From positions 452,413 through 516,412 of the forward strand of contig MNCI01000808.1 of assembly GCA_015680685.1 (NCBI GenBank): a DNA stretch of 64,000 nucleotides, read 5' to 3'. The notes under the pieces were generated by a model. That model did not search any database. It was given only the letters and a program-made list of their open reading frames with translations, and was not told the origin of the DNA. Both the position numbers and the translations under genes were made by a program. Below, one piece after another: positions 16,494 to 55,015 of the stretch; position 1 is the first letter of the stretch; the number at the start of each line of letters is the position of its first letter. Source of the DNA: Gnetum montanum. Taxonomy: Eukaryota; Plantae; Gnetophyta.

Positions 16494-18535
16494 TGAAAAC
16501 ACCACAAAATTTTGGCCTACCACTTTCAGACAAGATTCAAGCTAAGTCATGTAGCTACCCAAGCATGAATATAGCATGACCAAACTTGAAGGCCTCCGAA
16601 ACACCCCCTGATGGTTCACGATTCAATAGGCAAGGTCCCCCCAGGACCCATAGGTGACTGAACCAACTTCTGGCATCTAGAATCAAAATTTTTGGGCTCA
16701 AAATACTTGGGTTTGGCTAAGTACACTTTGGTCACACTGTGGCTTATGATGCACAGCGTAAGGATTAGCGTAACCAACTTTTGGAGCCCCAAAACTGAGT
16801 CAAAATAGGCTAAAATCGAGCACCAGGATCCCCATGACCTTCATCAAGGCCCCCAGCAGCTCCTAGCCTCTAGAAAATCAAAATTTGGGCCTTAAATGAG
16901 GCATTTTCAGTTGATTACGCTGGAGCTATATTTTCATACGCTGCACAACGCATGAACAACGTGACCAAGCTAAAACAGCCCAATTCAGGCATCTCAAGGC
17001 AAAATTTTGACATGGATTTGACTCCTAGGAGCTGGGCACCAGTTGTATATGATCAAAAGCCCCAAAAACTCAAAGATTGACCCTCAAGTGATGCATTCTT
17101 TAGTTCATACACTGAGCTTACGTTGCACAACGTAAGCATAGTGTAACCAAGCAAAAATAGGGCAAAACAAGCAGTTTTAGATAGCATCTTTGACACCAGA
17201 CCAACCCACAAGGACTGGCAGCACTTGTACTTGTTCACAGACTTCAAAAATCTATAATTTTGGCTTCAAACATACCATTTAAACTTGGTCAAGATAGGGT
17301 CACACTTTGGTCACGTTGCACAGCATGACCACAACATGACCAAACTAAATAGACTTGAAACAGAAATAAAATAGAGTCAAAATCAACACCCAAACCACCT
17401 TGGAGAGTAGGCAGTAATCAAGCATCAAAAAAGGGGATCAACATCCAAAAATTAGCTTAAAACAGAGCATGAACACTTGGTCACGCTGGGATCACACTTT
17501 GGTCATGCTGCACAGCGTGACCACAACATGACCAACCAAAACAAAGCCAAAATAGCCTTTGAATAAGCTCAAACTTGACAAGAAGCACCCTCTGGACCTC
17601 AGGCATCTAGATCCACTCTTGGAATAGGCTTCAGGGATTGAAAATGGGCTCCAAATTCATCATTTTTGGTTCATATGCTGGATGATCACACATCGGATGC
17701 TGGACGCTGACACCAAGACGCTAGGACACACCAGACCATAGTTTCAGAAGGCCAGAGAAAAAAATTCTTTGTTGTAACAAAGAATTATTTTGTAAATTTT
17801 CTTTTGTTATTCTTTGAGCATGCCAAGCTCTTATGCCGTGGATTGCACATGCTAGTGTAAGACTTGGTCATGCTAGACACTGTACATTGTAACATTTCGT
17901 GCATCCGGTCAACGCATACACCTGTCATCCGATCTGAATTTTTCTCACCCCGCAGCCACTAATTTGCTCCCAGATCCAAATATCATCCCAAAAACCCTAT
18001 AAATCTCCTATTTTTTTATTAGATGAAGGTGGAAAAATGGGAATCTCACACACTTAGGAAATATGGGCATCAATCTCATACGCTGGGCTTCATGCAGACT
18101 TGGGCGTTGTACACCTGAAATCCAAAGCCTACATCTTCCTACCATCTGTTCTCATCCATCGAGGCTACACGTCCACCTTGTGACCAATCTGCAATTGCGT
18201 TCTGACCAGTGCACATTCTAATTGTTTATCAATACAAGCAGTTTACATTATTTTTCATGTTCACATTCTTTCTATTTTCATTCTTTAAGTAGTTTACATT
18301 CATTTTCATTTTTTTACGTTCATTTTTGCATTTTTTTTTTACGTATAACCCAACGCACCGCAATTGCGTACATTCGGGGAAGCCCTCATTTGATCCACGT
18401 GCAGACCATTCAAGGCACTCTGCCTCCATTAATTTCCAGCTTGCCCTCAGGCAAAGGTAGGGTCTTACTATTTCATCCATAGATCTCTCGGCGCTCATTC
18501 ATTCCAGCCTCTCACCGACGATTTTGGACGGTATA
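16494..18535 (+). mobile_element. Solo LTR (2042 bp) with GGGAC target-site duplication
   Basis: Starts TGAAAACACC and ends ..gacggtata. GGGAC at 16489-16493 and 18536-18540. The 5' part matches the reverse complement of the PPT-preceded LTR ending at 63435. TATA ccctataaat at ~17995. Confidence 0.88.
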
Positions 18536-27868: not shown

Positions 27869-27873
27869 GTAGT

Positions 27874-29469
27874 TGAAACACCGTAGAAATTGTGGATCGG
27901 TCTGAGGAGAAGAATCGTAGTTCAAGCAAAAGTCCACAGCAGAAATCCAGAAGGCAGAAAAACCCAAAAAGGGAGGGGGCAACTTCAAGTTTTCAAATTC
28001 CTTAAAAAATTCTAACTTTGTTGCTCCTTACGCTACATTACGAAATCTAGCGTTACTCCTTATGGTACATTACGCAACATAACATCATTTCATTCAGCGT
28101 GATTTTGCTCGATGTGGCGAAGGTAGCTTACCGAAGAAATGAAGTTAGTAGAAATTCGAACTTCAGCCAATATGACAAGTCCAAGGCCTAAGTCGTGGTC
28201 TACAACTTGTCGCGTATTCCATCAAGTCTTTTGATCAGAATTGCATTTACACTCCATTAAGTAGAGCAGCGTAATGAGCCATGAGAAGATCCAAGTCAAC
28301 TTTAAAGGAAGCACTGGTCGCTTTACGCTTTATTACGTTGCACAGCATATGCAAGCGTAACATGCTAAAAAGTTAAGCACTTTTACACTCTATAACGCTC
28401 TGCAGCATAAATAAGCGTAACATGTGTGAAATCCATTACATTACGCTCTGCTACGCTACACAGCGTAAATGAGCGTAATGTGGTATAAAGTCAGCTAAAG
28501 CAATACCAGATGCGCACTTGTCATCCATGCACTGCAATACGCTCATCAGCATATCACAGCATAATCACGAGGTGGTTTCAGCAAGAGTGTTTTACAGCAC
28601 ATCTTGCCCTCAAAGCGTAATATGATATCGCCAGTTTCAACATAAAAATTTTCCAAGTCAATGGTGTTCGAAAGTTCGAGACATGTGTCATCGAGACCGT
28701 GCCTTCCCATATGATGCTGAACTTATAAATACCCTAGTTGACAAAGAAAAAAAAGGACTTTTCCCAAAAAAGACAGAGCATAAGGCATTTTTTGAGCATT
28801 AACAATGAGAGCAAGCAATCTTCTTGGTGAAAAGACGATCCTCTTCATTGGCGGTCATCAGCAACTTTAACAAAAAATTACCGAAGGCAAAAGGAGCAGA
28901 TCAGAGATTGAGAGATCGTCTGGTGTAATTGGCAAAGTTTACTGATCAGAAGCAGTTGATCAATAGACATCCAAGCTTGACCTTCCTTGCATTTCACTTC
29001 TGGTTTATGAGGTAGATCAACCTCCATTTCGTTCTCCTTTTTTTAACAGTCCTCTTGTTGCTTTGTATGTGCCTCGCACAAAGATAAGCGAAGTTTGCCA
29101 TTAGAACATTACATCTAATACATTTAGCTTTTGAATCAAGCCATAGATCTTGGAATTATGCATATCCCCTGAATTTTGTTTTCCTTATCACATTGATATT
29201 ATCGTTATTTCGAATTTTTTTTACATTGTTTTCTACTCCTTCTACGATTCACCGAATCAAATCATTCCGTGAAACATACGCATAAATATGCATTACCGCG
29301 ATATTCGATAAATTTACTGATTAATTAAGTCCCTGTCTGATTGACAAGACCGTTCAGGGCACCGTGGATTCGTTTTCCCTAGCACGGCCCTCGCACGGAT
29401 CTGTGGTTAAAACTATGTACGTGGATCTTCGTTCAGAATTTCCAGCGACCAACGTTTTCCGTCGTTACA
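27874..29469 (+). repeat. 5' LTR of element C
   Basis: TGAAACA...TTACA; colinear with 43738-45333 (about 8 mismatches in the first ~127 nt, counted by eye); TATA cttataaata at ~28722. Confidence 0.97.
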
Positions 29470-29504: not shown

Positions 29505-29726
29505 AATCCGTATTTTATGGGTAACCCTATATGCAATCCATACCCACATTCACATAACGTAAACATAATACCTCCAGGGAAGTTTACGAAATTGTGTGCT
29601 GTGGATTGGTCACAGTAACGATTCCTTTGGAATCCTACAGGGTAGAAAGCCTAATCATGATTCTGTTTTGCCGTCATCTTTGTTTTTAAAAACCTTTCCA
29701 TTTTTGGTTATTGATTTATCTAAAAA

Positions 29727-32700
29727 ATGGATTTTGCACATATGACTACTACCGCTATGATCGCTGTTGACATGGGTGCCACAACCGTAAATCCCAGCAC
29801 CGTTCCCAAATTGGTTTTCAGCGCGGCAAGACCTCACGGACCATCGTGTCATTCATTGAGATTACAAGGTAGGGATCCTTCATTCACCATCTTAACTCCT
29901 GAAGAATATAACTTCATTTGCATCAATATCCAGGCAAACCTCGCCCTTAGCCGAGCTGAGATGGAGGCAAAACAACATTATGAGTTGATCTACAAAGGGG
30001 GTCAAGACTTCACCCCTACCGCATATGACTACATCCCCCTTACTAAGCATTATCATGAACTTTTGTCCCAACTGGTTATGGCTAGGAATCGGATTACACC
30101 ATCTATTCTAGAGCCACAAAACGAGGAGGAGGAGGAAGATGAATTCGTAGCTCAGTCTGAACGCACGGATTCATATCATACCCTTAGCCCCCACACATAT
30201 GCGAATCCCCTATTTCATCCCCTCACCAACGAAGTTGCCCATCTCAACCCGATCATGGCCACCCAAATGCACATTCCCATTCCCATCGCCCCACAGGCCA
30301 CCACGCAACCCTCGACCTTGCAGGTGCAAACGCCACCTCAGAGTAATGTAAGAATAATTTTCTCACCGCATGTAATCAGGATTCCATCACTGATACCTGC
30401 GTCCATTTCCCCCCATTTCATTCACCAAGTGCAGGTCCATACCATGCCTATAACTTGCCCAGTGCAAAATCCGATGCAAACCTTATCATCACAGCCTATT
30501 GCAAGTTAACAGATTGCACCTACCATTCAATCGTAGCGATCTATGCAACAACCTATGGCTGGTCAGTGGATCATGCCTGTTGCTCACAACGGTCAATCTA
30601 TGTTCCATGGTGTGCAACCCTTGGCTGCATCTACCATGCATGTCCCATAGGTGATTGCAGAACATCCTCACACCTTCCATCCTACACATTCAGGGACGGC
30701 CAACTTGTCCGCACAGCCTATCGGGTGGTGGGTTCCGCAGGTGACTTCGTCCACGGGGACAGTGCCCGTCGCACCATTTGTTAGCCAAGTTACCACACCC
30801 TTTCCATTGCCTAATACTACTCTCCCAATCAAACCCCTTGCTCCTCAGGCATTGACATCGTCATCAACAGGTCTGGACCAAGCTTTCTCGCTTATTCAGA
30901 CTCTCACTGAGGAAGTCAAGCACCTTAAAGCTACTACCTCTGATACAATACAGGTCATGGATTTCTACAATGATGACCCCATCAGCCCAGTAGTCCCCAT
31001 GTTGTCGCTGCCTCTAGGGATGTCTTTGCCCCATTTTACCAAATACAACGGGGAAGGTGATCCTAATGCTCACCTAGTTACCTCTAGATTTGAATCCCTA
31101 CTACTACAAAAATGGCCTCATACAATTATCTGTGTCTTCGCAATGTCTCTGGCAGGTAAAGCCTTGGACTGGTACCGAGCACTCCCTCGCTTTTCCATCT
31201 CAACCTTGGAAGAACTTCTAACACAATTTGTGACTCGTTTTAAATACAATTTAAAATCAAAGGTCACATTAGATCAACTTATGGGGGTGAAACAAGACCC
31301 ACTCGAGGAAGTCCAGAAGTTTATACAACGATGGAGCGCTAATCTGAATGAAATCCATGAGCCTATCACGAAAGCCCACCTATTGGCTATTTTCAAAGGA
31401 GCAGTTAACGAATTCATCAAGTCTAAACTATATTACCTCGCCCCTCGCTCCCTAAGTCAGGCCTTCGCCCAAACTAAGAGCATCCAAGATGCTGCGGAGG
31501 CTAGCAAAGACCCAACGTATGTGGCCTATAAGAACACTAATAGCAAGGGTAAAGACAAAGCTAAAGCAACAACGACGAAAGTAGCTGCATTGGTCGAGGG
31601 TGCCAAAAAGAAGAATAACAAGAAGGCACCCACAACGCTTGATGAGACCACAGCTAGTGTAAGAAGCACCAGCCAAGAAACACCCACCCCTGAACAGCCC
31701 TCATAAGCAAAACCGAACTTCAAGCATAAAGATCTTTCGAAATATACAGCCATGCCCATAAAGCATTCGAAACTACTGAAATAATTATTAGGAGCAGGAT
31801 ATATTCAAAACAAGAAAATATCTGAAGAAGCTCTGAAACTTCACAGGCATCATTGTGAATTACTGAGGAACCCTTCTTCGGCTCTACCCAATGAACTGCC
31901 AGTCCCTAAGTCTTTCAAGCTGGATTGTTTTTGTGACTACCACCAGTTGTGTGGTCATGATACCGATTATTTCTAGGCATTGAAGGATGATATTCAATGC
32001 ATGATTGACAATGGTTCTTTGAAATTAGATAGCAGTAGTCCGATGCGTCCCGAAAACCAGGCGATGCATGTGTATAAAGACCCGTTAAATGCAAATGATG
32101 CAGCGTACAAAATCAACATGGTAAGTACGGATAGTGAGGGGAAGGTACTACCTAAGAAACCCTTTGTGTTACGTGTACCTATCAGTTCACCCTAGGGGGC
32201 AAGTTCCTCACCAGTAGTTGGCAGAGCCTCGAGGCCACCCTTTATTATTAGGACGCCTTCTCAAACTGTAACTCAGTCACCTACTTACAATAAAACCGCG
32301 GCCATGCCTGCGCCTACCCCTAAGGCACCTTTTATCCTTAGGGTGCAAAGACCACCAGTTCTCCCTTTTATGCAGGAGCGAGTCTCTAAACCTCCATCCA
32401 AAAAAAAAGGGAAAGAGAAGCGCCAATTAACGTAGCCAAAGACCACTCTACGCTAGGGTTTGCTAGGCCTAGGCCCCTGGCTTCTATAGCTCCGTCTACA
32501 CCTCCTGAGCAAGAAAAAGGTACAGAAACACAGCCACCTCCCCTTAGCAGAAAGAAACACAACCCTCTGATCGATACTATTCTGCCTCGGGAAATTCATC
32601 TTCTAGGGCGAATGGAAGAAGAAAGGGGAGACAAGCAACCCAGCCAAGAGCGGGATCTCCTTGACGCATTTACGGAAGTCAAGCAGGCTCTAAAAAAAAG

Positions 32701-33500
32701 AACATAATATTGAGCCTCTATGATTTACTTATGACGTCTCAAAAGCACCGGGAGGCTATGGTCCATATGCTGACATCCATACCTGCGGATGAAAGCTTAC
32801 CAGCGAAAGAGGAAGCGATACATGCTGTCATGTTTCCCCCTACTGCTGGGTGACCTAAACCTACCTCGTTGACCTTTCATGATGAATCCTTCAAAGATGA
32901 TCCTAAGAAAGGTTGGGTGACAACAGAACCCATGTTCGTCACCATCCAGGTTGGTCGACACCGAATCCAGAGGGTGCATGTTGATGACGGTGTAGCTAAA
33001 AATGTCATCCCTTACACTATAGTGGATAAGTTGGGCCTGGTCGATTAGATCAGTCCCACGACGACATCGTGCTTAAAGTCATTCAACGGGGAACAGGTTC
33101 AAGTCAAAGGGATGGTACACATCAATTTTGTGGCAGGAGATCAGTTCCCAACAAATGCCACATTCATTGTTGTTGAGGAGATGCCTGGATTCAATCTGAT
33201 CCTAGGGAGGTCTTGGCTAGCCCAACTGAGGGCAGTTTCATCATCGATACACCAAGAGATACATCTACTTTATGCAAGGGGAGAGGTAGTGATACATGGT
33301 GATGGAATAATGCCTGGAACTGTCAATAACATAGAGGAAGAATGGGGTTCGGAAACTGAAATGCCCGAAGACCAAACCCATGTCCAAGTTTTTGAATAGG
33401 TCGAAATGACCAATGACAGCCTGGCCTGGGTAGACCTACCATTTCAGGGAGAGGAGGATGATGTGAAGGAGCTAGGTCATACATCTCCTCACTTTCATTA
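29727..33500 (+). pseudogene. gag: gag-protease polyprotein of element C (premature stops, at least one frameshift)
   Basis: ORFs 29727-30509 and 30651-31706 are in the same frame. Retrotrans_gag core (KYNGEGDPNAHL, FAMSLAGKALDWYRALP); Cys/His knuckle FCDYHQLCGHDTD ~31930; protease IQRVHVDDGVAKNVIP ~32965 and FNLILGRSWL. Confidence 0.92.
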
Positions 33501-33691
33501 GTTTTGCCATTTACGCTTATCAGTTTTGACCATCATGCTTGTTTAGTATACATATAGTTATGTCTTTTATCAATTACGCCATTTACGTTTCCTAGTTTAC
33601 ACCATTTATGCTTTCCAATTTCTATTAGTTAAATCGATGCAATTACTCAAATATTTACATTTTTATCAACTACATTCCCTGATATACGCAA

Positions 33692-33985
33692 GTGGCCCGC
33701 AACGGCCTAAAACTAGTAGTGGCCCGCAACGGCCTAAAACTAGTAGTGGCCCGCAATGGCCTAAAACTAGTAGTGGCCCGTAATGGCCTAAAACTAGTAG
33801 TGGCCCGCAACAGCCAAAAACTAGTAGTTGCCCGCAACGGCCTAAAACTAGTAGCGGCCCGTAATGGCCTAAAACTAACAAAGGCCCAAAATGTCCCTAA
33901 ACTAAAACATCCCATTTCTATTTTTATGCAAGACCTGTATTTTATGCAAACGCTATGTGATGGCCCACAATGGCCTTAAACTAGC
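33692..33985 (+). repeat. 27-bp tandem repeat (gtggcccgcaacggcctaaaactagta), ~7 copies plus degenerate copies
   Basis: Directly visible; produces the VVARNGLKL repeat in the ORF track. Confidence 0.95.
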
Positions 33986-34170
33986 AACTCCATCCAATGG
34001 TTACAATAACACCACAGTCTCAAAACCCTCAATAATTCTATTTATGCTTTGTATAAATAAAAACACAAAATTAAAACAAAAAAAAACATAGAGAAACTTT
34101 TGTGATTAATCATGCTAAAATTCATATTGTCTTTGTTCCATTTCACAAATAAAATTGTGCGTAATCACAA

Positions 34171-37100
34171 TTACGCATCCTCTCCACCACCACAGTCTCC
34201 CGTATCTCTTAATTTCGCTTCTAAGCCTTGCAAGTCATCTTCATATGGGCTGTACCTTATAGGAAGTATCCCCTCATCTTCGCGGGGTGCTTCCACTAAA
34301 ACTTGCTCTCCAGGTCCACAATTCGCGTCGTTACGCTCTCCTTCCTGAACACATGCCCCATCCTGTTCACCTCCTTCGTTTGTTTCTTGTAACTACATAC
34401 AAAAAATATATCAGCAAAAGCTATGATAGGATAAGTCAAAACACAAAAAAAAAAAATATTTCAAATTCAATAATATTGAAACTTATTAGCAAAGGGGAGT
34501 TGATCTAAGCTAACCCATAGACGTTGCATAATCTCGTCTTCGGTCAACTCAGACCATACGCCGTTCCCCAAGTTAGTTCCAGCCTTAAGCTTCCCCTTCT
34601 CGACGCTAGTCCACCGAGGAGGTTCGGGGAAGAAGGTAGGGACTATGGTCTCTCCCCCAGGAAGAGTAATCTCTCTTTCTGGGGATGTGCTCACCGTCAC
34701 ATGCTCCTGGAACTTCTTGAAGGCCTCAGACGCACCAATGACATCAAGGAACATTCGCAAGGATTGAGCTTCAACAACGGAATCACGATAAAGCTGACGA
34801 TAAGCGACACTGTCTCGCTTATACAGATGCTTATGATCTTTTTCTGTCTGTCCCCACTCTTGGACACTTGAGCAAAAGTCCTTCCAGTCTTGATTCTTCT
34901 GGTCTAGGAGCTCTATTTGCATCCTTTGCTCAATTAATTCGTGACTAGTTTGCACGTTGTTTCTGACTGTGGTCCAATAGCGAGCGTACTCAATCATAGC
35001 TGTTCGCCAGTCCTTTTGACCCATTTCTTGAGCTTGTAGGAATTCACATCACGATCTTAAGTCTCTGACCTCTCTGGTCAGAGACATCCTTTCCTTCTCT
35101 GATCTCTGCAGCCTCTTCCAGAGGTCTTCATTGACATTCTGACTCTCCCACAAGGAGCGGGTTGAACGTAATGCACATTTATGCATCTCTTCGTAAATGT
35201 TGCGTGGAACGACTATTGCTTCTGATCCAGGTTCGGTGGTGTCCAAGTCAATGGCCTCCGTAGAGTCCCATCGAAAGTGAGCTCCTAACAACAAATATTA
35301 GATCAAATGTAATTACGCACTGTAACCTAATAAAAAAATAAGAATGGAATAGTCGCAGCATACCAGCGCTAGGATTGATGCGCTCCAAGCGCCTAATCAT
35401 ATCACTGATGATGCCTTCCATGAAGGAAAATTTATCGGGGAAGTCGCCCCATGCTCTGCTTACAACGGTGGATGGGGAATCACCTTGTTCATCTGTGGCA
35501 TAATTAAGTCAAGAATTTTGACTAATAACAGAATCACTTAAAAAATTTTCATACACTGACTACCTCTTCCTGTCCTAGTAGGAAGTGCGTCAATGTTCTC
35601 CACTTCTATTCTCTCTTCGTGCACAGGGCTCTGTGCGTTATTAAATCTAGTAACTGGGGCCTCCTCTTCCAAAACTGGGGCCCCTTCCTCACGCCGTAAC
35701 ACCATAGCCCCTGTTTCAGGGGTCAACTGCTTTGTAGGTCTCCCTGTTTCTGTCATATAATACACTTAAATAATTCAAAAAGTCTTGAATAAGTCACGAA
35801 AAATAACAATTACCATAACTTGTACTCTATCCTCTCGCTTACCAGGTGGAGGCTTACTCTGCTGAAACCTGACTTGCACAGTTCTTCCTACGCCTCTTGC
35901 CGGCTCCACAGGCGTTTCGGTTCGAGGCCTTTTACGCTGAACCGAAGCATCCACTATTTCTGCCACTAGTCGCTTCCCCCATGATGCATCACCCATGTAA
36001 GAGGGAAGCACCCCACCTACGGTGTTAGGACCTTGCATTCGAGGTGCCTCCACATCCTTAGTTGTTATAGAAAATGACTCCCCAATTCCCTTCAGAGGAT
36101 CCTGTGACCGGGTAGTGCCAAAGATATTGGAGATCCAGGGTTTGGATAACTGGTCTCGGTCCTATTGCACCCAGACCCCATTCCTCTGGACCACTAGAAA
36201 TTTGGCAAAACGCCAGAGGCAAGCTATGAAAAAAGAAAAGTGCACACTGAAATGGGACTCAAGCTTTTGGCGGAGCCTGATCATCTCAGTGCGTAGCCCT
36301 TCGGTGAAATAGCTTGCCCAGTCGAATTGGGTCCCTTCCTCTATCACCTCTCGCATGATACGAGCTTGTTCTATGGTGAATAGCTTCCCCGCAAGAGTGT
36401 TCTGGGGAAAGCTTGGGCTCGGAAGAGGGGCTAGATGGTTTTGGCAACCTCCAAAATGATCTTTTCGTAAGGGATCCCCTTCATGTCCTTCTTGGTCCCC
36501 AGCCACTCCTCCAGCTCTTCTTGACATTTGAGGCTCCTCCTCGACTTCTCTTCTATGGGAAGACCATCAGAGGGGATGCCAAAAATGTCAGTGAACAGCT
36601 GAGCATCAATGTCAAAATATACACACACGTTACGTATGTGTGTACAAAAACACTCAGCCCCCTCACTGAAGGAGTTGACCAGGGTTAAAATTTCACTTGC
36701 GGGGACATCAGGGGTTACAGACAAGAATAGATGCATCAACCTTGCCTCCCATAGCTTAGTAACCAATGCAGCTGAGGCCACCGCATGGCCTAGCCAGCAT
36801 TGTGCTTCCTTTATATCACCATAGCGGAAGAGGAGAGTGTTTGCCTCGTGGACGGAAATCGTGATAGTCACTTCCCGAGATTCCCTCACTGATAGCACAT
36901 GTCGAGACAATGTTAAAAAATTTCTCAACCAACAATATTCTGTAACTAATTTTGATGATGAAGCCTTACCAGGTCCAAATGGCAAAGGAAATGGAGGGAG
37001 CTTCTGCTGCACGTCTACGAGAGTGAGAGGAGGGTTCAAAGTCCATTCCTCATGTAACCATTTGAGGCTCTGACAATTCTTGAAAGCATCGGAGTAACGG

Positions 37101-38185
37101 GTGGGATACTCAGGAATCTCGAAGGCCATTTGCCGCATGACATCAGCACGTACGTTACTAGTGGATGTAAACTCATTTACCTCCCTTTCGATCAGGGACA
37201 ATGTATCATTGTTGCCCAGCAACCCACTCTCGTTGATAAAGAACCTATATCATATAGCACATTATTATCCAGTTCAAACATTATAAAATATATTAACATC
37301 ACTGCAAGAAAAATGACTTACCCGCCTGAGTAAAACACCGTGCCAGGTGGATTATGAAAGTAGGTTGAGACATGATGGGCTATGAACAGGGTGTTATAAG
37401 CATGATAACAACTAAATCTAGGCATCTCCCAAATCCAACTTAAACGCCTCAACCCTTTGGCGCTAAGTTCGTGGTCCTGGGGCCGACCAGTGTCAATAGC
37501 TCCGTCTGTCAAGAAAGCCAAAATACCTTGTGTAGAACCGACTAAAAAATGTTCCAGAATGGCCACAGCCACATCGCCCGACAGATGTGATCAAACGATG
37601 ATGTAGTAGTTATGCAGAAAAAACTGCAAGAACTCCCGCACATGCTTCCGGAAACATATTGCTTTCCCCTGTAGGCGGGTTTGAGGGGGAGGAACATTGG
37701 TTGCGTGAGGGTTTATACAACATAAAACCCTGACTATGTCCAAAACAATTAGGACAAGTTTCACCAGTATACTGTACAAAATGTAAACATGTTATCATTA
37801 GAAGAAAATCTAAATCTAGATTTCATTGCATGCTTAGAAAAATTGCAGATTACGCTCTAGCCGTGTAGCCAAAATCACTTAAACGCTTGCAACAGTGCAA
37901 GGTTTGTCTCAGATAATGGCGATGAATGCAATACCGCTGTCTAAACCCTTGTTCTAATACAAGGTCTGTATTCTTAAAACGCTAGTTTACGTAGATGACT
38001 AAAAATGAATAAAGAAAAGAAATATATATGATTAACAGCAATGCGAATAAGCAAGGGATGGCCTACCGATTCAAGGGGTTAACATCTCGTACTTCAACCA
38101 AAGCTTGCGAAGTGCATTGCAGACTCCCCTGCACTTCGTCAATTTTCGCCAGTTTAGCATTCTTTCCTCTCACCTTCGACGCCAT
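34171..38185 (-). pseudogene. Antisense 8-exon accessory gene (~1065 aa): FCP1/NIF-like HAD domain + extra-ORF-like domain + coiled coil; 4 premature stops and 1 frameshift in this copy
   Basis: Exons 38185-38067, 37771-37322, 37244-36970, 36888-35843, 35749-35564, 35492-35364, 35284-34515, 34392-34171. All introns are GT..AG (295, 77, 81, 93, 71, 79, 122 nt). Splice phases are consistent once a 1-nt deletion near 36405 is allowed. Introns 1-4 are shared with the copy in D. Confidence 0.85.
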
Positions 38186-38593
38186 GGTCACAGTTCTATG
38201 AACCTTCGCAAATAACGCATTGCTATCTTTTGCTCTCTCTCTCTCTCTCTGTAATAGCTGAATTTGAATTCGCAATAGCCAATAGCCTATTTTCGATATG
38301 AACCGCTTCCTTATAACATACAAGACTAATCGACTTGATGCCCAATTAAAGCGGGACTTTCCTAGATGCTGGTGTCAACATGAGATGGAACCTGAAGATC
38401 AGGGCATTAATGCGGTAGATATCGCATGGAGCATTGTCTGAAATGACATTAAACTACTACACCTTATCACTTCGTAATTGGGTCACATTAATTACAGGCT
38501 ATTCACGATATTCAAAATTCAGTTAGCTCTTCACGCTCAGCAACGTCATACCATACCTTCTCCTAATCACTTGCATATTTGACAATTTTGTAG

Positions 38594-41500
38594 GACAGTT
38601 GGCAAATGTACGCAACTTTATCAACACCCCTAGCTTTAACAGGCCCATATGAGGGAATCGTTAGAAAATTTGATCTTGAACTAGTAGAAACTAACCTTTT
38701 CCTCAATGACGCAACCATATCCACGTCAGAAGCATCTCCAGACCGGCCAGAACAATCGACGCGCACGCTAGACCTGGAGGCTGAAGACCCCCTCAGCGAG
38801 GTCTCTGTGGTTACGCATAAAGGTGAGAACAAAACTCTTAAGGTTTGTTCTCTACTAGACCAAAAGGCACATGATAATATAAAACAAGTCCTCTAGAATA
38901 ACGTCACAGTATTTGCATGGTCATATGAAGATATTCTAGGACTAGATCCAAGACTAATTCAACATAACATAATCCTAGACCCGCATATCAAAGCGATTAG
39001 GAAAAAGGAATGAAAAATCAAGCTAGAAATCGTGCTAGCAGTACGTGATGAGATCACTAAGCTGTACCAGGCTGGTTTTATTCGCGCGATCGATTGCTCA
39101 GATTGGGTATCTAACATTGTAGTTGTTCCTAAGAAGATCGAAGGGATACGTATTTGCATAGACTTCCGAGACTTGAACAAAGCTACAATCACAGATAACT
39201 TTCCGCTACCGAGTATCGACCAACTAGTAGATACAACCGCCGGGCATGCGGTTTTATCCTTCATGGATGGTTTTTCAGGTTATAATCAGATTTGCATTAA
39301 CCCAGAACATCAGCTGACCACAACATTCATGACACCTTGGGGGACCTTTTGTTACACCATGATGCCTTTTGGCTTAAAAAATGCCAGAGCAACGTATCAA
39401 TGAGCTATGACATACATCTTTAGTGATTACCTCCTAGGAAGACTGAATGATTATGTTGACGATATAGCTGTTAAGTTTGTAAAGTCAGAGGATCATCCAA
39501 AGGACCTAGAGTTAGTCCTTAAAAGATGCTCTAAATACGACCTCCAGCTCAACCCAAAGAAATACATATTCAGAGTCAAAATCGGATGCATGCTGGGGTT
39601 TGTGGTGTCGAAAACTAGCATACGAGTAGACCCTGATAAAGTCAAAGCCATTGCTGAGTTGACACCTCCTACAAATCTCAAGCAATTACACGGGTTACAA
39701 GGGTGATTACAGTTTATCAGGGGATTCATCTCAAAATTAATAGATAAATTACACCATATGCAACATCTACTTAAGAAGGGTGTTAATTTCGAATGGACAG
39801 ACAATTGTCAGCGTGCGTTTGACAGCCTAAAATAAGAACTTCAACGCTTGCCAACAGTATTCCCACCACAAAGGAATCAGCTGTTTTACATTTACCTCGC
39901 AACCTCAGACGTATCCCTAGCCGCATTACTCTATCAAAGGAGAGGCGATGGGTCAGAAGTACCCATCTACTACTTGAGTCATGCCCTATGTGCATATGAA
40001 ACAAGGTACAATGAAGTAGAGCATAATTATCTAGTGTTAGTGTTTACGCTCAAGAAATGTAGACACTATCTCTTCCATAGCAAAGTCAACAATATCTGCA
40101 AGAATAACATCCTGAGAGCTATTACGCACAACCTATATGAAAGTAGCAGGATAGCTCGTTGGAAAGCTATCACGGAAGAATTTGATTTGCATTATATTGG
40201 CCAATCTTCTACGAAAGGCCAAGCGATAGCCGATCAAATAATGACATCACCTATTGACAGTTAGGGAACGATAGAGCCAGAATTTCCCGACGAACATGTA
40301 CATAGTATAAGTCCTATTCTAACAAGCCTCGAAGCAACATTACATTTTGATGGAGCTTCAACTGCTAGAGGCGGTAGTTCTGCCACGGTCATTACGCTGT
40401 CACCTGAGGATGCACGTCTGCACGCCTACCGCTTGACCTTCCCCTGTACGAACAACGTGGCAGAATACGAGGGGCTCCTCAGAGGGTTATTAACAGCCAG
40501 AGAGCTTAACATTCAACACCTGGCGATTAGGGGTGATTCAATGCTCATGATAAATCAAATCATAGGAGTCTATGCCTGCAAGGCCATACATTTACAGCCC
40601 TACTGCGATATGGCTAAAGATCTCTTGAAGCAATTCATAGCAACCAATGCCCAACACGTGCTTCGAAATGACAACACGCTAGCCGATGCACTGGCCACAT
40701 TAGCATTGAATGTGCCACCACACTTGTTTGACACCTATCCCACCTTAATGATAGAATGTGCTGATCCTGTCATTCAGACGATGCAAATATCTTCATTGCT
40801 CGCGGATGAAATGCCGGAATGGTACGATAACATTAAAACTTACCTTCTGTATGGCGAACCACCACACAAGCTAACACACGCACAAAAATATGCAATCCGC
40901 AAGCAAGCTAGGCAATACGTCATCATAGGAGATAGTACCCTCTGTAGACGCTCTTTCGATGGTGTATTACTTACTTGCATTAACAAAGACCAAGAACAAC
41001 GAATAGTTGGCGAGGTTCACAAGGGACTATGTGGAGGACACGTAGCCCCACGGGCTATGGCCGGTAAAATCTGTCGCTAAGGGTATTATTGGCCGTATAT
41101 GGAAAAATATTGTCTCACAAAGGTTAAAACGTGTGACATGTGTCAACGTCACGCAAATCTTATACACGTGTCACCTACAGAATTACTTACGACCTAGATT
41201 ACATGGTTCTTCCAACAATGGGGATTAGACATCATAGAGCCTATCGCACCAAAATCTTCCGCAAGGCATAGCTTGATAATCACCACTACTGAATATTTCA
41301 TGAAGTGGGTTGAAGCCATCCCTTTATAGAAGATCACATCTCAACAGGTCTGCCATTTCATTTTGGACAACATCATAACCAGATTTGGCCTCCCAATGAC
41401 TATCGTGACCGACAATGGGCCACAATTTAGCAGTGTGGAAACCAAATCTTTTTGTGATAGCTTAGGTATCAAACAATCTTTTTTCTCGTCTTATTACCCA

Positions 41501-42061
41501 CAAGAGAATGTTCAAGCTGAAGCAACAAATAAGGTCATTATCAATTTTCTTAAGAAAATGCTCAGCAGTAACAAAAGACGATGGAATGAAAGGATCCTCT
41601 ATGTGCTATGGGCATATCGTACCACATGTAGAACAACTACAGAAAATACACCCTATAGCCTAGTCTATGGATCTGAGGCGGTGCTGCTCCTCGAATTACA
41701 AGTTCCTTCTTTGTGGATGGTTCTCTCCATGGTTATAAATGACTCTCAACACACTGAGTCTCGGATCATGGATTTGGATTCAGTAGAGGAGAAGCGAATA
41801 CAGATGCTTGATACGATTGAAAAGTATCAAGATAAATAGAGGTAGAATCATCATCATAATCTTCAACAACATCTGATTAAGAAAAAAGATTTGGTTCTCA
41901 AGGCCGTTTGTGAACCAGTAGGCAAGTTCTCTGCAAACTGGGAAGGCCCTTTCTTAGTAACCAACATGTATGGCAACGATGCATTCAAGCTAGCAGACAT
42001 CAATAGCAACAAGTTATCAAATTGCGTGAACCACATATACCTGAAGTGGTATTACATCTAG
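38594..42061 (+). pseudogene. pol: pol of element C: RT-RH-aRH-INT (premature stops)
   Basis: RT (WVSNIVVVPKK, CIDFRDLNKA, SFMDGFSGYNQI, YVDD ~39452); RH (IYLATSD, PIYYLS); aRH (LHFDGAS, CTNNVAEYEGL, RGDS, N..ADALA); INT (HKGLCGGH, CDMCQRH, WGLDII, TDNGPQF, AEATNK, WEGPF). Confidence 0.96.
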
Positions 42062-42099
42062 CTGCATATCCAGTGTTAACATCAGGCGCAACGCCACCA

Positions 42100-42590
42100 T
42101 CTGCTATGATGTAAAATTGGCATTCTTGGCACATGTCCACCATGACACTAAACTGGCAATGATCGTCCGCCATGATGCTAAACTGGAAATGATCGTCTGC
42201 CATGATGTAAAACTGGTAGATTTCAATCATCCACTACGACGTAAAACTGGCAGTGTTGTACAAGTCCACCAAGACGCTAAACTGGCATTTCCTGCATGTG
42301 TCCACCACGACGCTAAACTGGCACCGGCTGTCCACCATGACGTAAAATTGGAAAAGGTAAGCATCCATTTGCTGATATGTAAAACCAGCATAGACTTGTC
42401 CCTGGGTCATGACATAAAACTAACATCCACAGCATAGTCTACTGAGACCATAAATTAGCCCTACCACCATCCACTACAACGTAAAACTAGCATTTCTTGG
42501 TCTGCCCAGACTTTAAATCGGGACCATGGTCTGCTGAGACTTAAAACCAGCAACAACAGTCTACCAAGACTTAAAACTGGGACTCATACA
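42100..42590 (+). repeat. Degenerate ~30-36-bp tandem repeat after integrase (core catgacgctaaactggca)
   Basis: Roughly 14 recurring ..gac/gat-gtaaaact(g/a)g units; HHDAKL repeats in ORF 42117-42437. Confidence 0.85.
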
Positions 42591-43721
42591 CCGCCAACAT
42601 ATGAATCAAGCGAGCGTAAGCATCTCTGCACAGCTGCAAGATGCACAGGGTGGGATGTTGGGATAGCCCCAACATTGCCACCTCAAAGGCATCCTGCTGA
42701 CTCCTCAGATATGCCGAGAGGCATACTACTGATCCCTCAGAGATACCATTACTGCGAAAAGTTCAGTGAGGGTACCTCTGAGAGGTCAGTTATGCCTTCC
42801 AGAACCCCAAGGGAATACTCATCAGCCACGACCTTGGGAATCTCTAGAAACCATCACTATCAGACTCCAGCTTCATAGATTCATCTGGCAGGTTCTTTGC
42901 ATAACCAGCTAGATGTGATGACTCTGATGGTCGACAGCGACTCGCCAGGCAGAGCCGAACGTCAACATTGAGACCCTGGCCTCTTTCTACGGCCCCTTAC
43001 TTACGGCTCGCCCACTCCTTCTCGCCTTGGATGATGCTTGTTTCAACAAATTCTTCGGTGATTCGGCTGAGCAGTGGCATCCTCTTTTTTCTTTTCTAAT
43101 TGCAGGTTAATTGCTACGAGGACGTCATTCAACAGTATGTTTACCAAGGCAGTGAAGTGTAGATAGCGTCTCGAGATGGCCGCTCAGGTTAGCCTGTCTA
43201 CTTAGGAGTGCAATCCTGTCTTCTTCATAATTCGACCTCTTGTTCCTATTCCCCTCCTTGGCCATTCCATCAGCTTTCCTTGTACAAAATGTAAATACGC
43301 AACACACGCTTTCCTCGTATGCATTACAGTGAAGTCCATGAATTAGCGTAACGCAACTTGCCTAGTGGGCACAAAAAAAAAACTTATCCAGGCCGTGCAG
43401 GCGTAACACAACTCACCCATACAAGACTCTTTATCTATCATACGACGGTCTCACTCCATGCAAATGCAATCGTAGAAGGATGCCTCATGACTTATTTGTG
43501 GAAAGCTGCACTCACTCACTTGAGTCTTCCCTGAACCTCCATCCTTTCACCTCTATAAAAATTCCTTCCCCTATGCGTTCAACCTTCAATTTTCCCACTT
43601 CTGCACTTCCATACCGACAAGGCGACACCTAAGTAACCATCGACAGATGTTGTTGGCACTTTTACCTATCTGGTGTTTCGTATTCTTTGTCGACATCTAT
43701 CGGGCAAGCCCTCTAAACGTC

Positions 43722-43737
43722 AACAAAGAGGGGCCAT
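43722..43737 (+). promoter_or_regulatory. Polypurine tract of element C
   Basis: aacaaagaggggccat immediately before the 3' LTR; near-identical tract at 63436-63451 on the minus strand. Confidence 0.85.
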
Positions 43738-45333
43738 TGAAACATCGTAGAAATTGTGGATCGATTTGAGGTGAAGAATCGTAGTTCAAGAAAAAGTCCA
43801 CAGTAGAAATCCAGAAGGCATAAAAACCCAAAAAGGGAGGGGGCAACTTCAAGTTTCCAAATTCCTTAAAAAATTCTAACTTTGTTGCTTCTTATGCTAC
43901 ATTATGCAATGTAGCGTTACTCCTTATGCTACATTATGCAACGTAACATCATTTCATTCAGCGTGATTTTGCTTGATGTGGCGACGGTAGCTTACCGAAG
44001 CAATGAAGTCAGTAGAAATTTGAACTTCAACTAATATGACAAGTCCAAGGCCTAAGCAGCAGTCTACAACTTGTCGCATATTCCATCAAGTCTTTTGATC
44101 ATAATTGCATTTACGCTCCATTATGTAGAGCAGCGTAATGAGCCGTGAGAAGATCCAAGTCAACTTTAAAGGAAGCACTAGTCGCTTTATGCTTTATTAC
44201 GCTACACAACGTAAGCAAGCGTAACGTGCTAAAAAGTTAACCACTTTTATGCTCTATAACGCTTTGCAGTGTAAATAAGCGTAACGCGTGTGAAATACGT
44301 TACATTATGCTCTGCTATGATACACAGTGTAAATGAGCGTAATGTGGTATAAAGTCAACTAAAGAAATATTAGACGCACATTTGTCATCCATGCGCGGCA
44401 ATACGCTCATCAGCATATCATAGTGTAATCACGAGGCGGTTTCAGCAAGAGTGGTTTACAGCACATCTCACCCTCAAAGTGTAATATTATATCGCCAGTT
44501 TCAACATAAAAATTTGCCAAGTCAATGGTCTTCGAAAGTTCGAGACACGTGTCATTGAGACCGTGCCTTTCCATATGATGCTGAACTTATAAATACCCCA
44601 GTTGACAAAGAAAAAAGAGTACTTTTCCCAAAAAAGACAGAGCATAAGGCATTGTTTGAGCATTAATAGTGAGAGTAAGCAGTCTTCTTGGTGAAAAGAT
44701 GATCCTCTTCATTGGCGGTCATCAGCAGCTTTAAGAAAAAATTACCGAAGGTAAAAGGAGCAGATCAGAGATCGAGAGATCATTTGGTACAATTGGCAAA
44801 GTTTACTAATCAGAAGCAGTTGATCAATAGAAATCCAAGCTTGACCTTCCTTGCATTTCACTTTCGGTTTATGAGGTAGATCAACCTCCATTTCGTTCTC
44901 CTTTTTTTAACAGTCCTCTTATTGCTTTGTATGTGCCTTGCACAAAGATAAGTGAAGTCTGCCATCAGAACATTACATCTAATACATTCAGCTTTTGAAT
45001 CAAGCCATAGATCTTGGAATTACGCATATCCCCTGAATCTAGTTTTCCTTGTTGCATTGATATTATCGTTATTTCAAATTTTTTTTACATTGTGTTCTAC
45101 TCCTTCTACGATTCACCGAATCAAATCATTCCATGAAACATATGCATAAATATACATTACCGCAATATTCGATAAATTTACTGATTAAGTAAGTCCCTGT
45201 ATGATCGACAAGATCATTTAGGGCACCACGGATTCGTTTTCCCCAGCACGGCCCTCACACGGATCCGTGGTTAAAATTGTGTACACGGATCTTCGTTTAG
45301 AATTTTCAGCGATCGACATTTTCCGTCATTATA
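43738..45333 (+). repeat. 3' LTR of element C
   Basis: Same length as and colinear with the 5' LTR; followed by the GTAGT TSD. Confidence 0.97.
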
Positions 45334-45338
45334 GTAGT

Positions 45339-46350: not shown

Positions 46351-47345
46351 GTAACTTGTCTTTTTTATTTTCTGCAATTTCTTTTAAATTTAATATAATA
46401 TTGATGCATGCGACTTAGAATAAAAATGTGCAACACCAATACGTTTGAAGGATTCCAACCCAGAAAGTACTTGTCTCTCCTGGAGATGAATTTGGTGATA
46501 GGGCAAACCAAGGGACTGATTGGAGGCCTCTCGCCAGCAAAATGAAACATCTTAGTATTCTTTGCAGTGGAAAACCATGGCCTCATAAGGTCATTGCTCC
46601 TATAGAAATGGAAGGAAAAAGATGCAGACATTCAAGTACACGAGCACCTACCGAAGAAATCCAACATGATGTACCAAGACTACATGAAACACAGTAAATT
46701 TTCTTTGTGTCCTAGTGGCTACGAGGTGGCCAGTCCGAGTATCGTGTAGGCAATATATAGCAAATGCGTTCCTATGATAGTAAGCGATCCCTATGTCTTG
46801 TCTTTCATTGATGTTTTGAATTGGCATTTTTTCTCAGTTTAGGTGCCGTTTTAGAGAATTCTTGAGTTGAAGAAGATTTTTGGAGTGCTCATGAGGGACT
46901 TGTTCAGGTTTTCATCTTTACTCTGACCCTCGACCCCGTGTAGGACAGGTGTTTCCTTCACAGGATGAGTTGCATTACATCTGTGAAGGGTTTTAACCTC
47001 CCTATAGATGCTTCCAATGTGGCAGGGTATGTTACGCATGTCATGGAATTTTCACTCTGAAGTAGTCAGGCTAGTCGAGCCACTCACTTCGCAACACCGT
47101 AGCATTTGCTGCCGTGGCAAGTCGTACTCTTGGTTGCACCTTGTAAGCACGACATAGAGCAAGATGCAAAGTGAGGGTAGGGGTCTTGCTTTATGTAGAC
47201 ATTGTTGAAGCTATTGGACACCCACGCTGATGCATGGTGTCCAAAGCAGGAAGGCTAGTAGTGGCCTTGGCACCATCGGCGTGGAGGAGCTAGCTTCAAA
47301 GGGGCCAGAAGTTGTTGTAAGTGCAGATGCTCTGGAATCCCTGTC

Positions 47346-48472
47346 TGATGAGACGTGGTTCACATAAGCAATGATATCGCATCGTCACCTGCAATATCAT
47401 GTACATGATATCGTGGTCTGTCGCCATATCTATAAATAAGAGGCGGCTCTCCCTTGTTTCATCATCCTAGGCTAGAAGTAGGGAAACTCTGGTAGTTTGA
47501 TCATTCCAAAGATAGAATATTTTCCATGTGCCCACAGTAGGATTCCTAAAGTGAACGGATCTTTATTCGAGCAACATTATACCTAAACACAAGCTGTGTA
47601 CAGAAATAAATACGAGCTTCTTGGATAAACCTTGCAGTGCATGGAATAGGATTTTATTTAATGTTACTGCTTTCCTAGTAATGCAAATGAGTCCGACTTG
47701 ATTATGAGCATCAAAGGATGTGTACGGATAGTCAAGGAACAGATGCTCATGAGTACGACTTGATTATGAGCATCTAAGGATGTGTACAAATAGTCAAGGA
47801 ATGGATGCTCATGAGTACAGCTTGATTACAAGAATCTAAGGATGTGTACGGATAATCAAGGAATCGGCTGCTCATCGCATGCGGTATGAGTACGACTTCA
47901 TTATGAGCATCTAGTATGACTACTTGGTATCCCAGTGGTGTATCCAGGATCTGCACTTGGTAATCCTAGTGGTAGTCATGCACGAAGATGTGTACGGTTA
48001 GTCAAGGAATTAGCTGCTGATCACACTTAGGCTAGATAGCTTCCTCAACCCTTTCCTCCTAGTTAAGTGCCTCAGTACGACCACTTCGAGCATGTGCGTT
48101 ACATGTGGTGATCCCAATGACGATTAGCATTTGGTAGCCATGGTTGCATCTGTTTATGGTGTGTACAGTAAGTGGGAATGGATGCTAATGCTAGGTAATT
48201 TAGACTTAGGTCATTAGTTAGAGTTAGTTAGTTTCTCAACCCTTTACCTCGATAGCATAGGAGATAAAACCAGAAAAGATATAAAAATCATATACCTTGA
48301 ACTTACTTAACCATACACCGTGACAACTACAAGTAAATCTAGGAAGACAACGAATAATTAACCCTAATTGTTCCATGGGGTGTGTAGGCACTTAGTCTGT
48401 GGAGTTCGACCAGATCGCGCATGCTATGCTCGTTTCATATGGTTGAGTGTAGGGGTACCTCACCACTCATCA
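47346..48472 (+). repeat. 5' LTR of element E (1127 bp), with ~61-bp internal tandem repeat x3 at ~47687-47870
   Basis: Colinear with 53884-55015; repeat unit atgagtacgacttgattatgagcatctaaggatgtgtacggatagtcaaggaatggatgctc. Confidence 0.95.
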
Positions 48473-51960: not shown

Positions 51961-53883
51961 ATCAATTCTTTTAATTTCTTATTTTACAACATTTTTGTTT
52001 TACATGTTTTTTTCTTACACATTTTTGTTTTACAAATTTCTTTAACTTTTCTTGTTTTTGTTTTACAACATCATTATACTTTTCCATTTTGTGTGTGTGT
52101 CTGTGATCCACCCTGTAAGTTTGTCCCATAATACGTGTTCTTCATGATGGTATGAACTATTTTGTTGTTGATTTCTAATGTTTGATTTTTACCTTTAAGT
52201 AACAATGTTGATACTAAGATATATTTCTTTTGATATGGCAGACAATCAGATCACTTCATCCATCCATCCAAAATTTCCTATGGTTTCTCTCGGCTTGGAA
52301 ATGTACAAGTCCCCTTCTAATAAGAACTTTAATGAATCGGTGACTGGGCATTTCTCAAACTAAGGAAGGATTCAAGGATTGAAAAAGGGTGTGACTTCAA
52401 GGGAACTTGATGCTTTTGTGTTGGCCATTCTCTTGGGTGCTTGGATGTTTTCTTCTCAAGTTTTCTTACCATTCTGATGTTACCCAATCATTGGGAAGCT
52501 GAGTAATAAAAATAGCAAAGCCTTTGCATGGTGTGGTTCTCATGCATAAAAACAAAAAATAGAGAAAAAAAAAGAGAAGAAAAAGAAAAGGAAGAAAAGT
52601 GAGAATTCAAAGCACACTCCTTAGACAAAATAAACTTAGGCTACAAACACTGGTTATGGAACCAAAAGTGTTCCCTTTAACTAAGACCCTTCTCGCTTCC
52701 CATTCTCTCCTTGTTTTGTCAAAATGGTGGTAACTCTTGGGGAAGGCATTCTTGTTATCCACGTGGATGGTTTGGCCAAATGCATTGATGCGAAGTCACT
52801 GGAAGTGGTTTGTTTGAGGTCGGAGTTGGAATGAGATCTGCCAAGTCACATTAATCATGCAACACACAGGGGGCTGTACACCATCTTGTTCTTGGGATTC
52901 CATTCCATTCTCTTTTCTCCATCCTTCTCTCCATTGTTCACCTCATTGCCGATTGTATCATTAGTGGATATATTTTGGTGGATGCATTGTTTTCTTTTTG
53001 GTAAAAGCTTGTGGTTAAGACTTTAACTTCTGTTCCAAATGACATTCCCAGAGCCTATGGACTCTTTGAATGTGGGTTTGTCAGGGCATTAAGGGCATGA
53101 GCCTGCTTTGGGGAGAACCCACTGACATTCCTATTTGGTGCACCAGTTAAATTCTTTCCCCTAACATCTCTGCAATTACTTATTATTTTGTTCATTTCCA
53201 TCTTGACATCCGATTCACTAATGTTTTCAGTTATCCCTTTTTATCTATCTTTCTTACTCCTTTTTTTTCTCCATTCTACCACTACCGGAGATTCGCGATT
53301 AGTCATGGGGGTATGGGGCTTGATTTTTTTGATTTTCTCCAAGCCCCAAATTTTTTGATTTTCTTCCTAACCCCTACACCTTTGGTAGTCATCATTAATA
53401 TATTCCCAAGTTTGAATCAGCCATACCACAACCTAGCCAATGGACTTACACCGAAGGAAGGTATTAATTACATGATGATTCATTTACCCTTACTAATATA
53501 AGATTGTGTTGTGTATGAAGATGGTGATCATGCAATAATGGACTAGATTTGGAGGGAACACATGGAATGGAGCAGCACTACAGCAGCTATGCAAGGAGTA
53601 AGATCGATGGCGTGCTTACCGATGGACAATGGAAGGCACAATCTTGGCGTTGGCAGCAACAACACTTCTTTTTCTTTCTCTCTTTCTCACCTGCCAAATG
53701 AGGCCTAATGTCAATGTAATAAGGTGTTCACCCTTGTTGTCATGAACACTAGTTTTGTCAATTCTTATAATGATGATTTGTTCACATGTCATCTCATTAG
53801 TTCCATTCCCCTCAATAAGTCCATACCTTCCTGATATTATTGTAAGGAACTCGAGGACGAGTTTTCATTCAGTCATGGAGGTA

Positions 53884-55015
53884 TGATGAGACATGATTCA
53901 CATGAGCCGTGATATCACGTCGTCACCTACGATATCACATACGTAATATCATAGTCCACCACCATATCTATAAATAAGAAGCAGCTCTCCCTTGTTTCAT
54001 CATCCTAGGCTAGAAGTAGGGAAAATCTGGCAGTTTGATTACTCCAGAGATAGAATATTTTCTATGTGCCTGCAGCAGGAGTCCTAAAGTGAATGGATCT
54101 TTATTCGAGCAACATTATACCTAAACATAAGTTATGTATGACAATTTAGATGAGCTTCTTGGATAAACCTTGTAGTGCATGGAACATGATTTTATTTAAT
54201 ATTATTTACTACTTTTCTAGTGATGAGGAATGAGTACGACTTGATTACGAGCATCTAAGGATGTGTATGGATAGTCAAGGAATGAATGCTCATGAGTGCA
54301 ACTTGATTATGAGCATGTAAGGATGTGTACAGATAGTCAAGGAATGGATGCTCATGAGTACGACTTGATTACAAGTATCTAAGGATGTGTACAGATAATC
54401 AAGGAATCAGCTGCTCATCGCATGCGATATGAGTATGACTTCATTACGAGCATCTAGTGTGACTACTTGGTAACCCAGTGGCGTATCCAGGATATGTGCT
54501 TGGTAATCCCAGTGGTAGTCGTGCACAAAGATGTGTACAGTTAGTCAAGGAATCAGCTTCTTATCACACTTAGGCTAGATAGCTTCCTCAACCCTTTCCT
54601 CTTAGTTAAGTGCCTCAGTACGACCACTTCGAGCACGTGCATTACACATGGTGATCCCAGTGATGATTAGTGTTTGGTAGCCATGGTTGCATTGGTTCAG
54701 GATGTGTATGGTAAGTGGGAACGGATGCTGATGCTAGGTAATTTAGACTTAGGTCATTAGTTAGAGTTAGTTAGTTTCTCAATCCTTTACCTCAATAGCA
54801 TAGGAGATAAAACCAGAAAATATATAAAAATCATATACCTTAGACATACTTAACCATACACCGTGACAACTACAAGTAAGTCTGGGAAGACAATGAATGA
54901 TTAACCCTAAGTGTTCCATGGGGTGTGTAGGCACTTAGTCTATGAAGTTCGACCAGATCGCACGTGCTACGCTCATTTCGTATGGTTGAGTGTAGGGGTA
55001 CCTCACCACTCATCA
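53884..55015 (+). repeat. 3' LTR of element E (1132 bp)
   Basis: Preceded by actcgaggacgag...agtcatggaggta; followed by ctgcc. Confidence 0.95.

Follow-up and report, generated by a model that had tools for sequence, protein, structure and literature searches.

The subject of this text is a 64,000-nucleotide stretch of Gnetum montanum DNA (GenBank assembly GCA_015680685.1, contig MNCI01000808.1, positions 452,413 to 516,412 of the forward strand), referred to below as the window; all coordinates are positions within it. The window contains one complete insertion of a long terminal repeat (LTR) retrotransposon, element C, recognised by its LTR pair and target site duplication (TSD). Between the protease and the reverse transcriptase (RT) of C there is a gap of ~5.2 kb, and the minus strand of this gap carries a gene of eight exons (38185-34171). 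The gene is real, is borne by the element and inherited with it, and has decayed in C. Part of it recurs in element D, a second copy that is diverged, inverted, and situated at the right end of the window.

The antisense gene and its host element

A sequence-only reading of this stretch had proposed eight minus-strand exons joined across seven GT-AG introns into a frame of ~1065 codons that ends with TAA at 34173-34171 and is damaged by four stops and one frameshift. We rebuilt the gene model using just the exon lengths from that reading and the GT/AG rule, and both the structure and the frame were reproduced. For exons 4 and 5 a single set of coordinates fits. Exons 6 and 7 have two options each, and the pair that was kept (35492-35364 and 35284-34515) adds no stop in exon 6 and is contiguous with the acceptor at 34392.

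The exons total 3197 nt. Exon 1 (38067-38185, 119 nt) starts with the ATG at 38185. Exon 2 (37322-37771, 450 nt) holds a NIF/FCP1-like region, and is followed by exon 3 (36970-37244, 275 nt) and by exon 4 (35843-36888, 1046 nt), the block most conserved with D, for which a likeness to PMD or DUF1985 is a lead only. Exon 5 (35564-35749, 186 nt) encodes a Glu/Pro-rich linker. After exon 6 (35364-35492, 129 nt), exon 7 (34515-35284, 770 nt) encodes a charged, probably helical C-terminal region, and exon 8 (34171-34392, 222 nt) ends with the terminal TAA. All seven introns run from GT to AG, are 71-295 nt long, and have plant-like contexts (e.g. GG/gtaagt...atatag/G). The donors occur in gtaagt, gtaagg and gtaagc contexts, and the acceptors consist of a pyrimidine-rich tract and AG. 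The GC content of the introns is 0.25-0.35 as against 0.46-0.51 in the exons, and intron T is 0.37-0.51; the GC contrast played no part in model building.

Four premature stops interrupt the frame, at 37593-37591 in exon 2, at 36433-36431 and 36164-36162, and at 35051-35049 in exon 7, together with one frameshift near 36400, within exon 4. The off-frames of the joined model have 30-67 stops each. The codon usage of the model frame and that of the gag-pol genes of C correlate at r 0.57, compared with 0.04 and -0.09 for the other two frames, 0.13-0.27 for the opposite strand, and 0.08-0.13 for the introns. G makes up 33% of codon position 1 in the model frame. When C and D are compared, the antisense frames reach a summed E of 3e-98 versus 6e-61 for the sense frames. 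A further comparison of C with D, by identity at each codon position, was uninformative, as sense-strand controls show the same pattern through alignment bias.

In C, the antisense gene has 4 stops in 1065 codons (plus one frameshift), gag 7 in 903, protease 2 in 244, and pol 10 in 1348, plus frameshifts. The antisense gene is kept in C at least as well as gag, protease, and pol. Since its decay is no heavier than that of gag-pol, the gene was probably open when C inserted and has drifted since, decaying along with gag and pol.

The host element is flanked by the 5-bp TSD GTAGT, found at 27869-27873 and again at 45334-45338 after the 3' LTR. Its 5' LTR (27873-29469, plus strand, TG...CA) is ~1.6 kb long, and its 3' LTR (43737-45333, plus strand) has a purine-rich tract just upstream. 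The LTRs start with TG and end with CA, but with TA in the 3' LTR. They are 91.4% identical across a 1595-bp match (27873-29467 vs 43737-45331), and their Kimura two-parameter (K2P) divergence of 0.093 corresponds to ~3.6 million years at a rate of 1.3e-8 per site per year. The internal genes are on the plus strand. The gag-protease frame (29724-33396) is decayed, with 9 stops and 2 frameshifts, and contains the gag domain (30651-31703, PF03732, E 6.5e-07). Protease-like motifs (D-D-G and ILGRSWL, recognised in the translation by eye only) occupy about 32900-33250, in continuity with the gag frames and 5' of the spacer; a Pfam search for the protease gave no match. Beyond the gap, the decayed pol (38594-42875) comprises RT (39014-39703, PF00078), RNase H (39836-40261, PF17917), an extra RNase H of the RVT_3 type (aRNH; 40265-41077, PF13456, E 7.4e-17), and integrase (41330-41836, PF00665). 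About 0.9 kb separates the last pol frame from the 3' LTR.

The mark of the Tat clade is the aRNH, which in angiosperm lineages is positioned between RNase H and integrase (PMC4408406, PMC6317226). C has an aRNH in exactly this position and therefore belongs to the Tat clade of Ty3/gypsy elements (OTA superclade). In the angiosperm Tat lineages IV-VI the protease is joined to gag and not to pol. The protease-like motifs of C are on the gag side of the gap, an Ogre-like condition. The nearest relatives of its pol, from Vicia villosa and Theobroma cacao, are only 33% identical, so there is no close relative with which the architecture can be compared.

The gene could have entered the gap as a separate insertion. 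However, a repeat search found no terminal inverted repeats (TIRs) or direct repeats bounding the spacer, as the sequence-only reading had also claimed, and with neither TIR nor TSD of its own a nested DNA transposon or other separate insertion is ruled out. A chimeric assembly is ruled out by the TSD of C. Because the gene lies inside one TSD-flanked element and lacks such marks, it is borne by the element rather than a later arrival. Its recurrence beside pol in D, and its decay like that of gag-pol, bear out the earlier view that it is part of the element.

The second, inverted copy

The pol of D runs from 58465 down to 55412 and is 68% identical to that of C in DNA and 61% in amino acids. 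Adjoining this inverted pol is the D gene, of which exons 1-4 (59528-62205, plus strand) can be delimited. Exons 1-4 of C match the antisense strand of D exon by exon, with 33-48% amino acid identity, and the similarity ends at the predicted introns. Exon 1 of D (59528-59646) is 119 nt long as in C, starts with ATG and has the same donor; it aligns with its C counterpart along the full length, with the initial Met in both. Exon 2 (60164-60612, 449 nt) is one base shorter than the 450 nt of C, which is consistent with D's own frameshift there. The whole of C exon 3 aligns to 60697-60972, within D exon 3 (60696-60985, 290 nt), and C exon 4 aligns to 61087-62201, within D exon 4 (61070-62205, 1136 nt), at 37-41% amino acid identity. 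The lengths of exons 1-3 are equal modulo 3.

Every splice site that can be compared (7/7: donors 1-4 and acceptors 1-3) is kept in D at the homologous position and in a similar context. The introns of D (517, 83, and 84 nt) are not alignable to those of C. The three comparable stops of C are sense codons in D, and the stops of D are at other places; the breaks are therefore private to each copy. D exon 4 also holds an 82-bp tandem duplication (61651-61812, repeat starts 82 bp apart, 98.75% identical over 80 aligned bp), a private lesion of D.

An LTR pair (47343-48472 and 53881-55015; 89% identical, 6.5 kb apart) abuts the 3' end of the D pol; it probably belongs to another element, which either is nested in D or adjoins it. 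On the other side, D is interrupted beyond a stretch resembling exon 5. An inverted 474-bp repeat (16497-16968 vs 62963-63433, 82.7% identity) has its right copy just past the end of the similarity to the gene, and 63437-63504 is a short match to the tract that precedes an LTR of C. D seems to be interrupted or rearranged near 62963-63504.

Predicted protein, promoter, and RNA

Protein searches used the exons or minus-strand pieces singly. Ten minus-strand pieces were compared with Pfam at E 0.01 and E 10, and nothing rose above noise except PF03031 (NIF, the FCP1/SCP CTD-phosphatase-like HAD domain), which matches the beginning of exon 2 with E 4e-4 in D and 0.015 in C. It is the sole and best Pfam match of exon 2, and covers the same profile positions, 2-77, in both copies. 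In C and D one can recognise by eye the family's layout of motif I, the FL..L...vvvft segment, and motif IV. In this weak and provisional alignment by eye, C has D-I-V-R-V and D has E-I-R-G-I where DxDxT is expected, and neither copy has an acidic residue at the position of motif IV. The replacement of catalytic positions in both copies suggests a non-catalytic NIF-like domain, which would probably be a binding module rather than an enzyme.

A short motif resembling PMD or DUF1985 occurs in the N-terminal part of exon 4, and in an Atlas feature search of exon 4 Streptophyta clusters lay nearby (DUF1985 0.93, PMD 0.84; leads only). The PMD/DUF1985-like character of exon 4 is a lead. Transposase_28 (PF04195) had no match in any piece. 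The ~1065-aa protein would have a NIF/FCP1-like HAD domain in its N-terminal region, followed by a PMD/DUF1985-like conserved block and an acidic linker, and would end in a charged C-terminal region.

The presumed promoter and 5' untranslated region (UTR) of the gene occupy the interval from its ATG to pol (38186-38593, minus strand). This interval has a TATAAG-like box near 38316 and a GA repeat at 38232-38250. A TATAAG-like box is found 118-131 nt 5' of the ATG in C and D (about 118 in D), with a GA repeat in each. The interval measures ~0.4 kb in C and ~0.75 kb in D, and would be compatible with an internal promoter of the Grande gene23 kind (PMC7264820). On the plus strand, the whole gap (33388-38593, ~5.2 kb) is a candidate sense intron, with a donor CAA/GT at 33387/33388 and an acceptor ttttgtag/GAC at 38593/38594. 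Removal of this predicted intron would fuse the gag-pro and pol frames in phase. An acceptor-like site occurs at the corresponding position of D (about 58783), ~10 codons before a motif common to both pol proteins.

Four RNA runs bearing the same species label were aligned to 33100-38950 at 88% likeness. Depth was about 0-1.5, and nearly all reads were partial and below 95% identity. The reads neither support nor refute expression of the antisense gene. Two apparent joints, 34086/34438 and 34456/34055, are artefacts: they fall on A-rich repeats (34053-34076 and 34431-34454) with poly-A between. These look-alike repeats draw poly-A-containing reads of run X1 and so give false joints.

Origin, mechanism, and known relatives

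We read the antisense stretch as an accessory gene (an extra open reading frame, or eORF) of an Ogre-like, Tat-clade Ty3/gypsy family of LTR retrotransposons, with a probability of about 0.8. Several observations weigh against this reading. Exons 6-8 are seen in C alone and rest on splice sites, composition, and frame, and the D counterpart of exon 5 is only a low-complexity look-alike frame (about 62340-62560) with no significant alignment. Both copies in the window are dead, and the antisense gene evolves much faster than pol (about 37% vs 61% amino acid identity between C and D). No RNA joint was found at any predicted junction on either strand in the four runs, at their low depth. A 272-aa piece (36434-37249, minus strand) had no homologue by word index or by exhaustive phmmer against 1.84 billion representatives, nor did a 193-aa piece of exon 7 by sequence search, and an Atlas look-up of that piece was empty. 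The PF03031 scores of 20.5 bits (D) and 15.4 bits (C) are under the gathering score of 21.8, and the NIF-like part had no match in NCBIfam or in a two-sequence profile search of the PDB. AlphaFold2 gave a mean confidence (pLDDT) of 45 for the N-terminal part of exon 4 and 51 for the NIF-like part, too poor for a fold search. PMD (PF10536) had no Pfam match up to E 10 in the exon 4 pieces of C and D, which are broken by stops and give low sensitivity.

Some of these points would also suit a passenger pseudogene, that is, a fragment of an intron-bearing host gene, or a mobile element, that landed once in the ancestral pro/RT spacer and has been copied along without use. Gene transduction by LTR elements is known (PMC7264820), and the absence of expression in the RNA reads, the lack of detectable relatives of the protein, and its fast divergence relative to pol all agree with a passenger. 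Yet neutral cargo is not expected to keep a 1065-codon frame and seven splice sites across lineages whose pol DNA is 32% different and whose introns are unalignable, and the decay that is seen is private to C and D and no heavier than that of gag-pol. We regard a passenger as improbable. Much less probable still is an artefact of hand-splicing, in which chance open frames of the minus strand were joined by chance GT..AG pairs. It is true that the introns were picked by the reader to remove stops, that exons 6-8 have no second copy, and that exon 5 has just a low-complexity look-alike in D. Against it stand stop-free antisense stretches of 272, 193, 134, and 128 codons, compared with a stop about every 16-33 codons in the off-frames, a GC contrast between exons and introns that is independent of model building, a codon-usage signal specific to the frame, and the conservation of the splice sites in D. 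Hardly credible, finally, is a host gene flanked by chance by two separate element fragments, one with gag-pro and the other with pol: the gene has the anatomy of an ordinary plant gene, but one LTR pair and a matching 5-bp TSD enclose gag-pro, gene, and pol together, and D repeats the arrangement of gene beside pol, inverted.

LTR retrotransposons are expected to lose introns, as their replication passes through RNA. For an accessory gene in antisense, we propose the following route. A promoter of the gene's own, located between its ATG and pol, would drive transcription in the direction of the 5' LTR, and splicing would be restricted to that antisense transcript. The genomic RNA would hold the introns as their reverse complement, which the spliceosome does not read; reverse transcription would therefore copy the introns into every new insertion. 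That the antisense orientation is the reason for intron survival follows, by inference, from the logic of retrotransposition. On the sense strand, the whole 5.2-kb gap probably corresponds to the Ogre pro/RT intron in enlarged form. Some of the sense transcripts would lose it by splicing and give Gag-Pro-Pol, and the packaged RNA would retain it. Should the sense intron be used as in Ogre, the element would have an intron that contains the antisense gene and has grown from a typical 274 bp to 5.2 kb.

Speculatively, the protein may act in the nucleus to regulate the transcription or silencing of the element itself, a role of the class proposed for the PMD-coiled coil (PMD-CC) and Transposase_28 eORFs of other Tat lineages. 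The fullest form of the proposal is that a Tat/Ogre-like lineage keeps a functional multi-exon antisense gene in its own sense intron, encoding a catalytically dead CTD-phosphatase-like domain plus a PMD-like module directed against host RNA polymerase II (Pol II) regulation or silencing. It is tentative and, taken as a whole, rather doubtful. A pseudo-phosphatase encoded by a transposon, and perhaps joined to a PMD-like module, would be reminiscent of the MAIN/MAIL1-PP7L silencing module of the host, and would make the product of the C gene a concrete candidate for a retrotransposon-encoded counter-silencing factor. If there is indeed a functional antisense gene in a sense intron, the same DNA would be spliced differently from its two strands. 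C may then be the first natural LTR retrotransposon in which an intron-rich accessory gene has been described, and its product may represent a new class of transposon-encoded regulators.

The closest known kin of the C gene are the movable eORFs of Tat elements, the Ogre pro/RT intron, and the 3' antisense ORFs. Ogre (Tat lineage IV; Pisum, Medicago, Vicia), whose primer binding site is complementary to tRNA-Arg, is like C in belonging to the Tat clade, in having the aRNH between RNase H and integrase, and in being a large element with an extra gene. The protease of Ogre is fused to gag, as that of C appears to be, and in both a non-coding stretch precedes pol; in Ogre this stretch is an intron that some transcripts lose by splicing (PMC6317226, PMC4408406). 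However, the gag-pro to pol spacing in Ogre averages about 274 bp (PMC6317226) and has no gene, whereas the ~5.2-kb spacer of C has the eight-exon antisense gene. The Ogre eORF (PMD-CC) is in sense, 5' of gag. In contrast, the frame 5' of gag in C is in the gag frame and has no PMD match even at E 10. It is a 261-codon open stretch (29724-30506) with no family match, and may extend Gag at its N-terminus or represent a fused extra ORF.

The PMD-like lead in C matters because in Tat lineages III, IV, and V the eORF encodes a PMD followed by a coiled coil, and its position and orientation vary (PMC4408406). The antisense PMD and PMD-CC eORFs of lineages III and V are accessory genes like that of C, which may have a PMD-like core and a charged helical tail, but they lie 3' of pol and are described as single ORFs (PMC4408406), whereas the C gene lies between protease and RT and has seven introns and a NIF-like N-terminus. 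More generally, the antisense additional ORFs (aORFs) of Tat/Retand elements have been reported between pol and the 3' LTR, as the sequence-only reading had stated, and the sense ones upstream of gag (PMC7264820, PMC11963269, PMC4408406). The aORFs of Retand, Grande, and RIRE2 (Transposase_28; Grande gene23) resemble the C gene as family-conserved antisense accessory genes. Grande gene23 is transcribed from an internal promoter of its own, and has been proposed to act as a regulator (PMC7264820, PMC11963269). These aORFs differ from the C gene in their position between pol and the 3' LTR, in their TRP28 domain, and in having no intron structure described; the C gene has no TRP28 match and lies between protease and RT.

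The C gene also has an analogue in a retrovirus. The HBZ gene of human T-cell leukaemia virus type 1 (HTLV-1) is an antisense retroviral gene with a spliced isoform and a regulatory role; it has one intron, its transcription starts in the 3' LTR, and its product is a bZIP protein. Both genes are antisense within a reverse-transcribing element, with no sequence relation. HBZ has been cited as an analogy (PMC11963269).

The C gene is new on the Tat extra-ORF theme in its position, its intron content, and its N-terminal domain. In plants, the accessory genes known from LTR elements have been described as single ORFs located at the element's ends. Our literature search found no description of a gene between protease and RT, or of a multi-exon accessory gene in an LTR element, in keeping with the earlier proposal of a distinct architecture; an earlier description is possible. 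The REXdb survey considered only unspliced ORFs of at least 250 codons outside the polyprotein region (PMC6317226). A survey of this kind would miss such a layout, which may therefore be commoner than is known. The eight-exon antisense gene shows a route by which an intron-rich gene can ride a retroelement, and the mechanism parallels that of engineered retrotransposition reporters. The gene occupies the pro/RT gap where Ogre tunes Gag versus Pol by splicing, so that sense splicing and antisense transcription could be coupled.

Tandem arrays are a typical feature of the non-coding parts of Tat elements. In C, an array of ~7-10 units of 27 bp (33664-33931) lies past the protease frame and short of the 3' end of the antisense gene, and short tandem repeats of 30-36 bp occur at 42135-42346, within the frames 3' of the integrase core.

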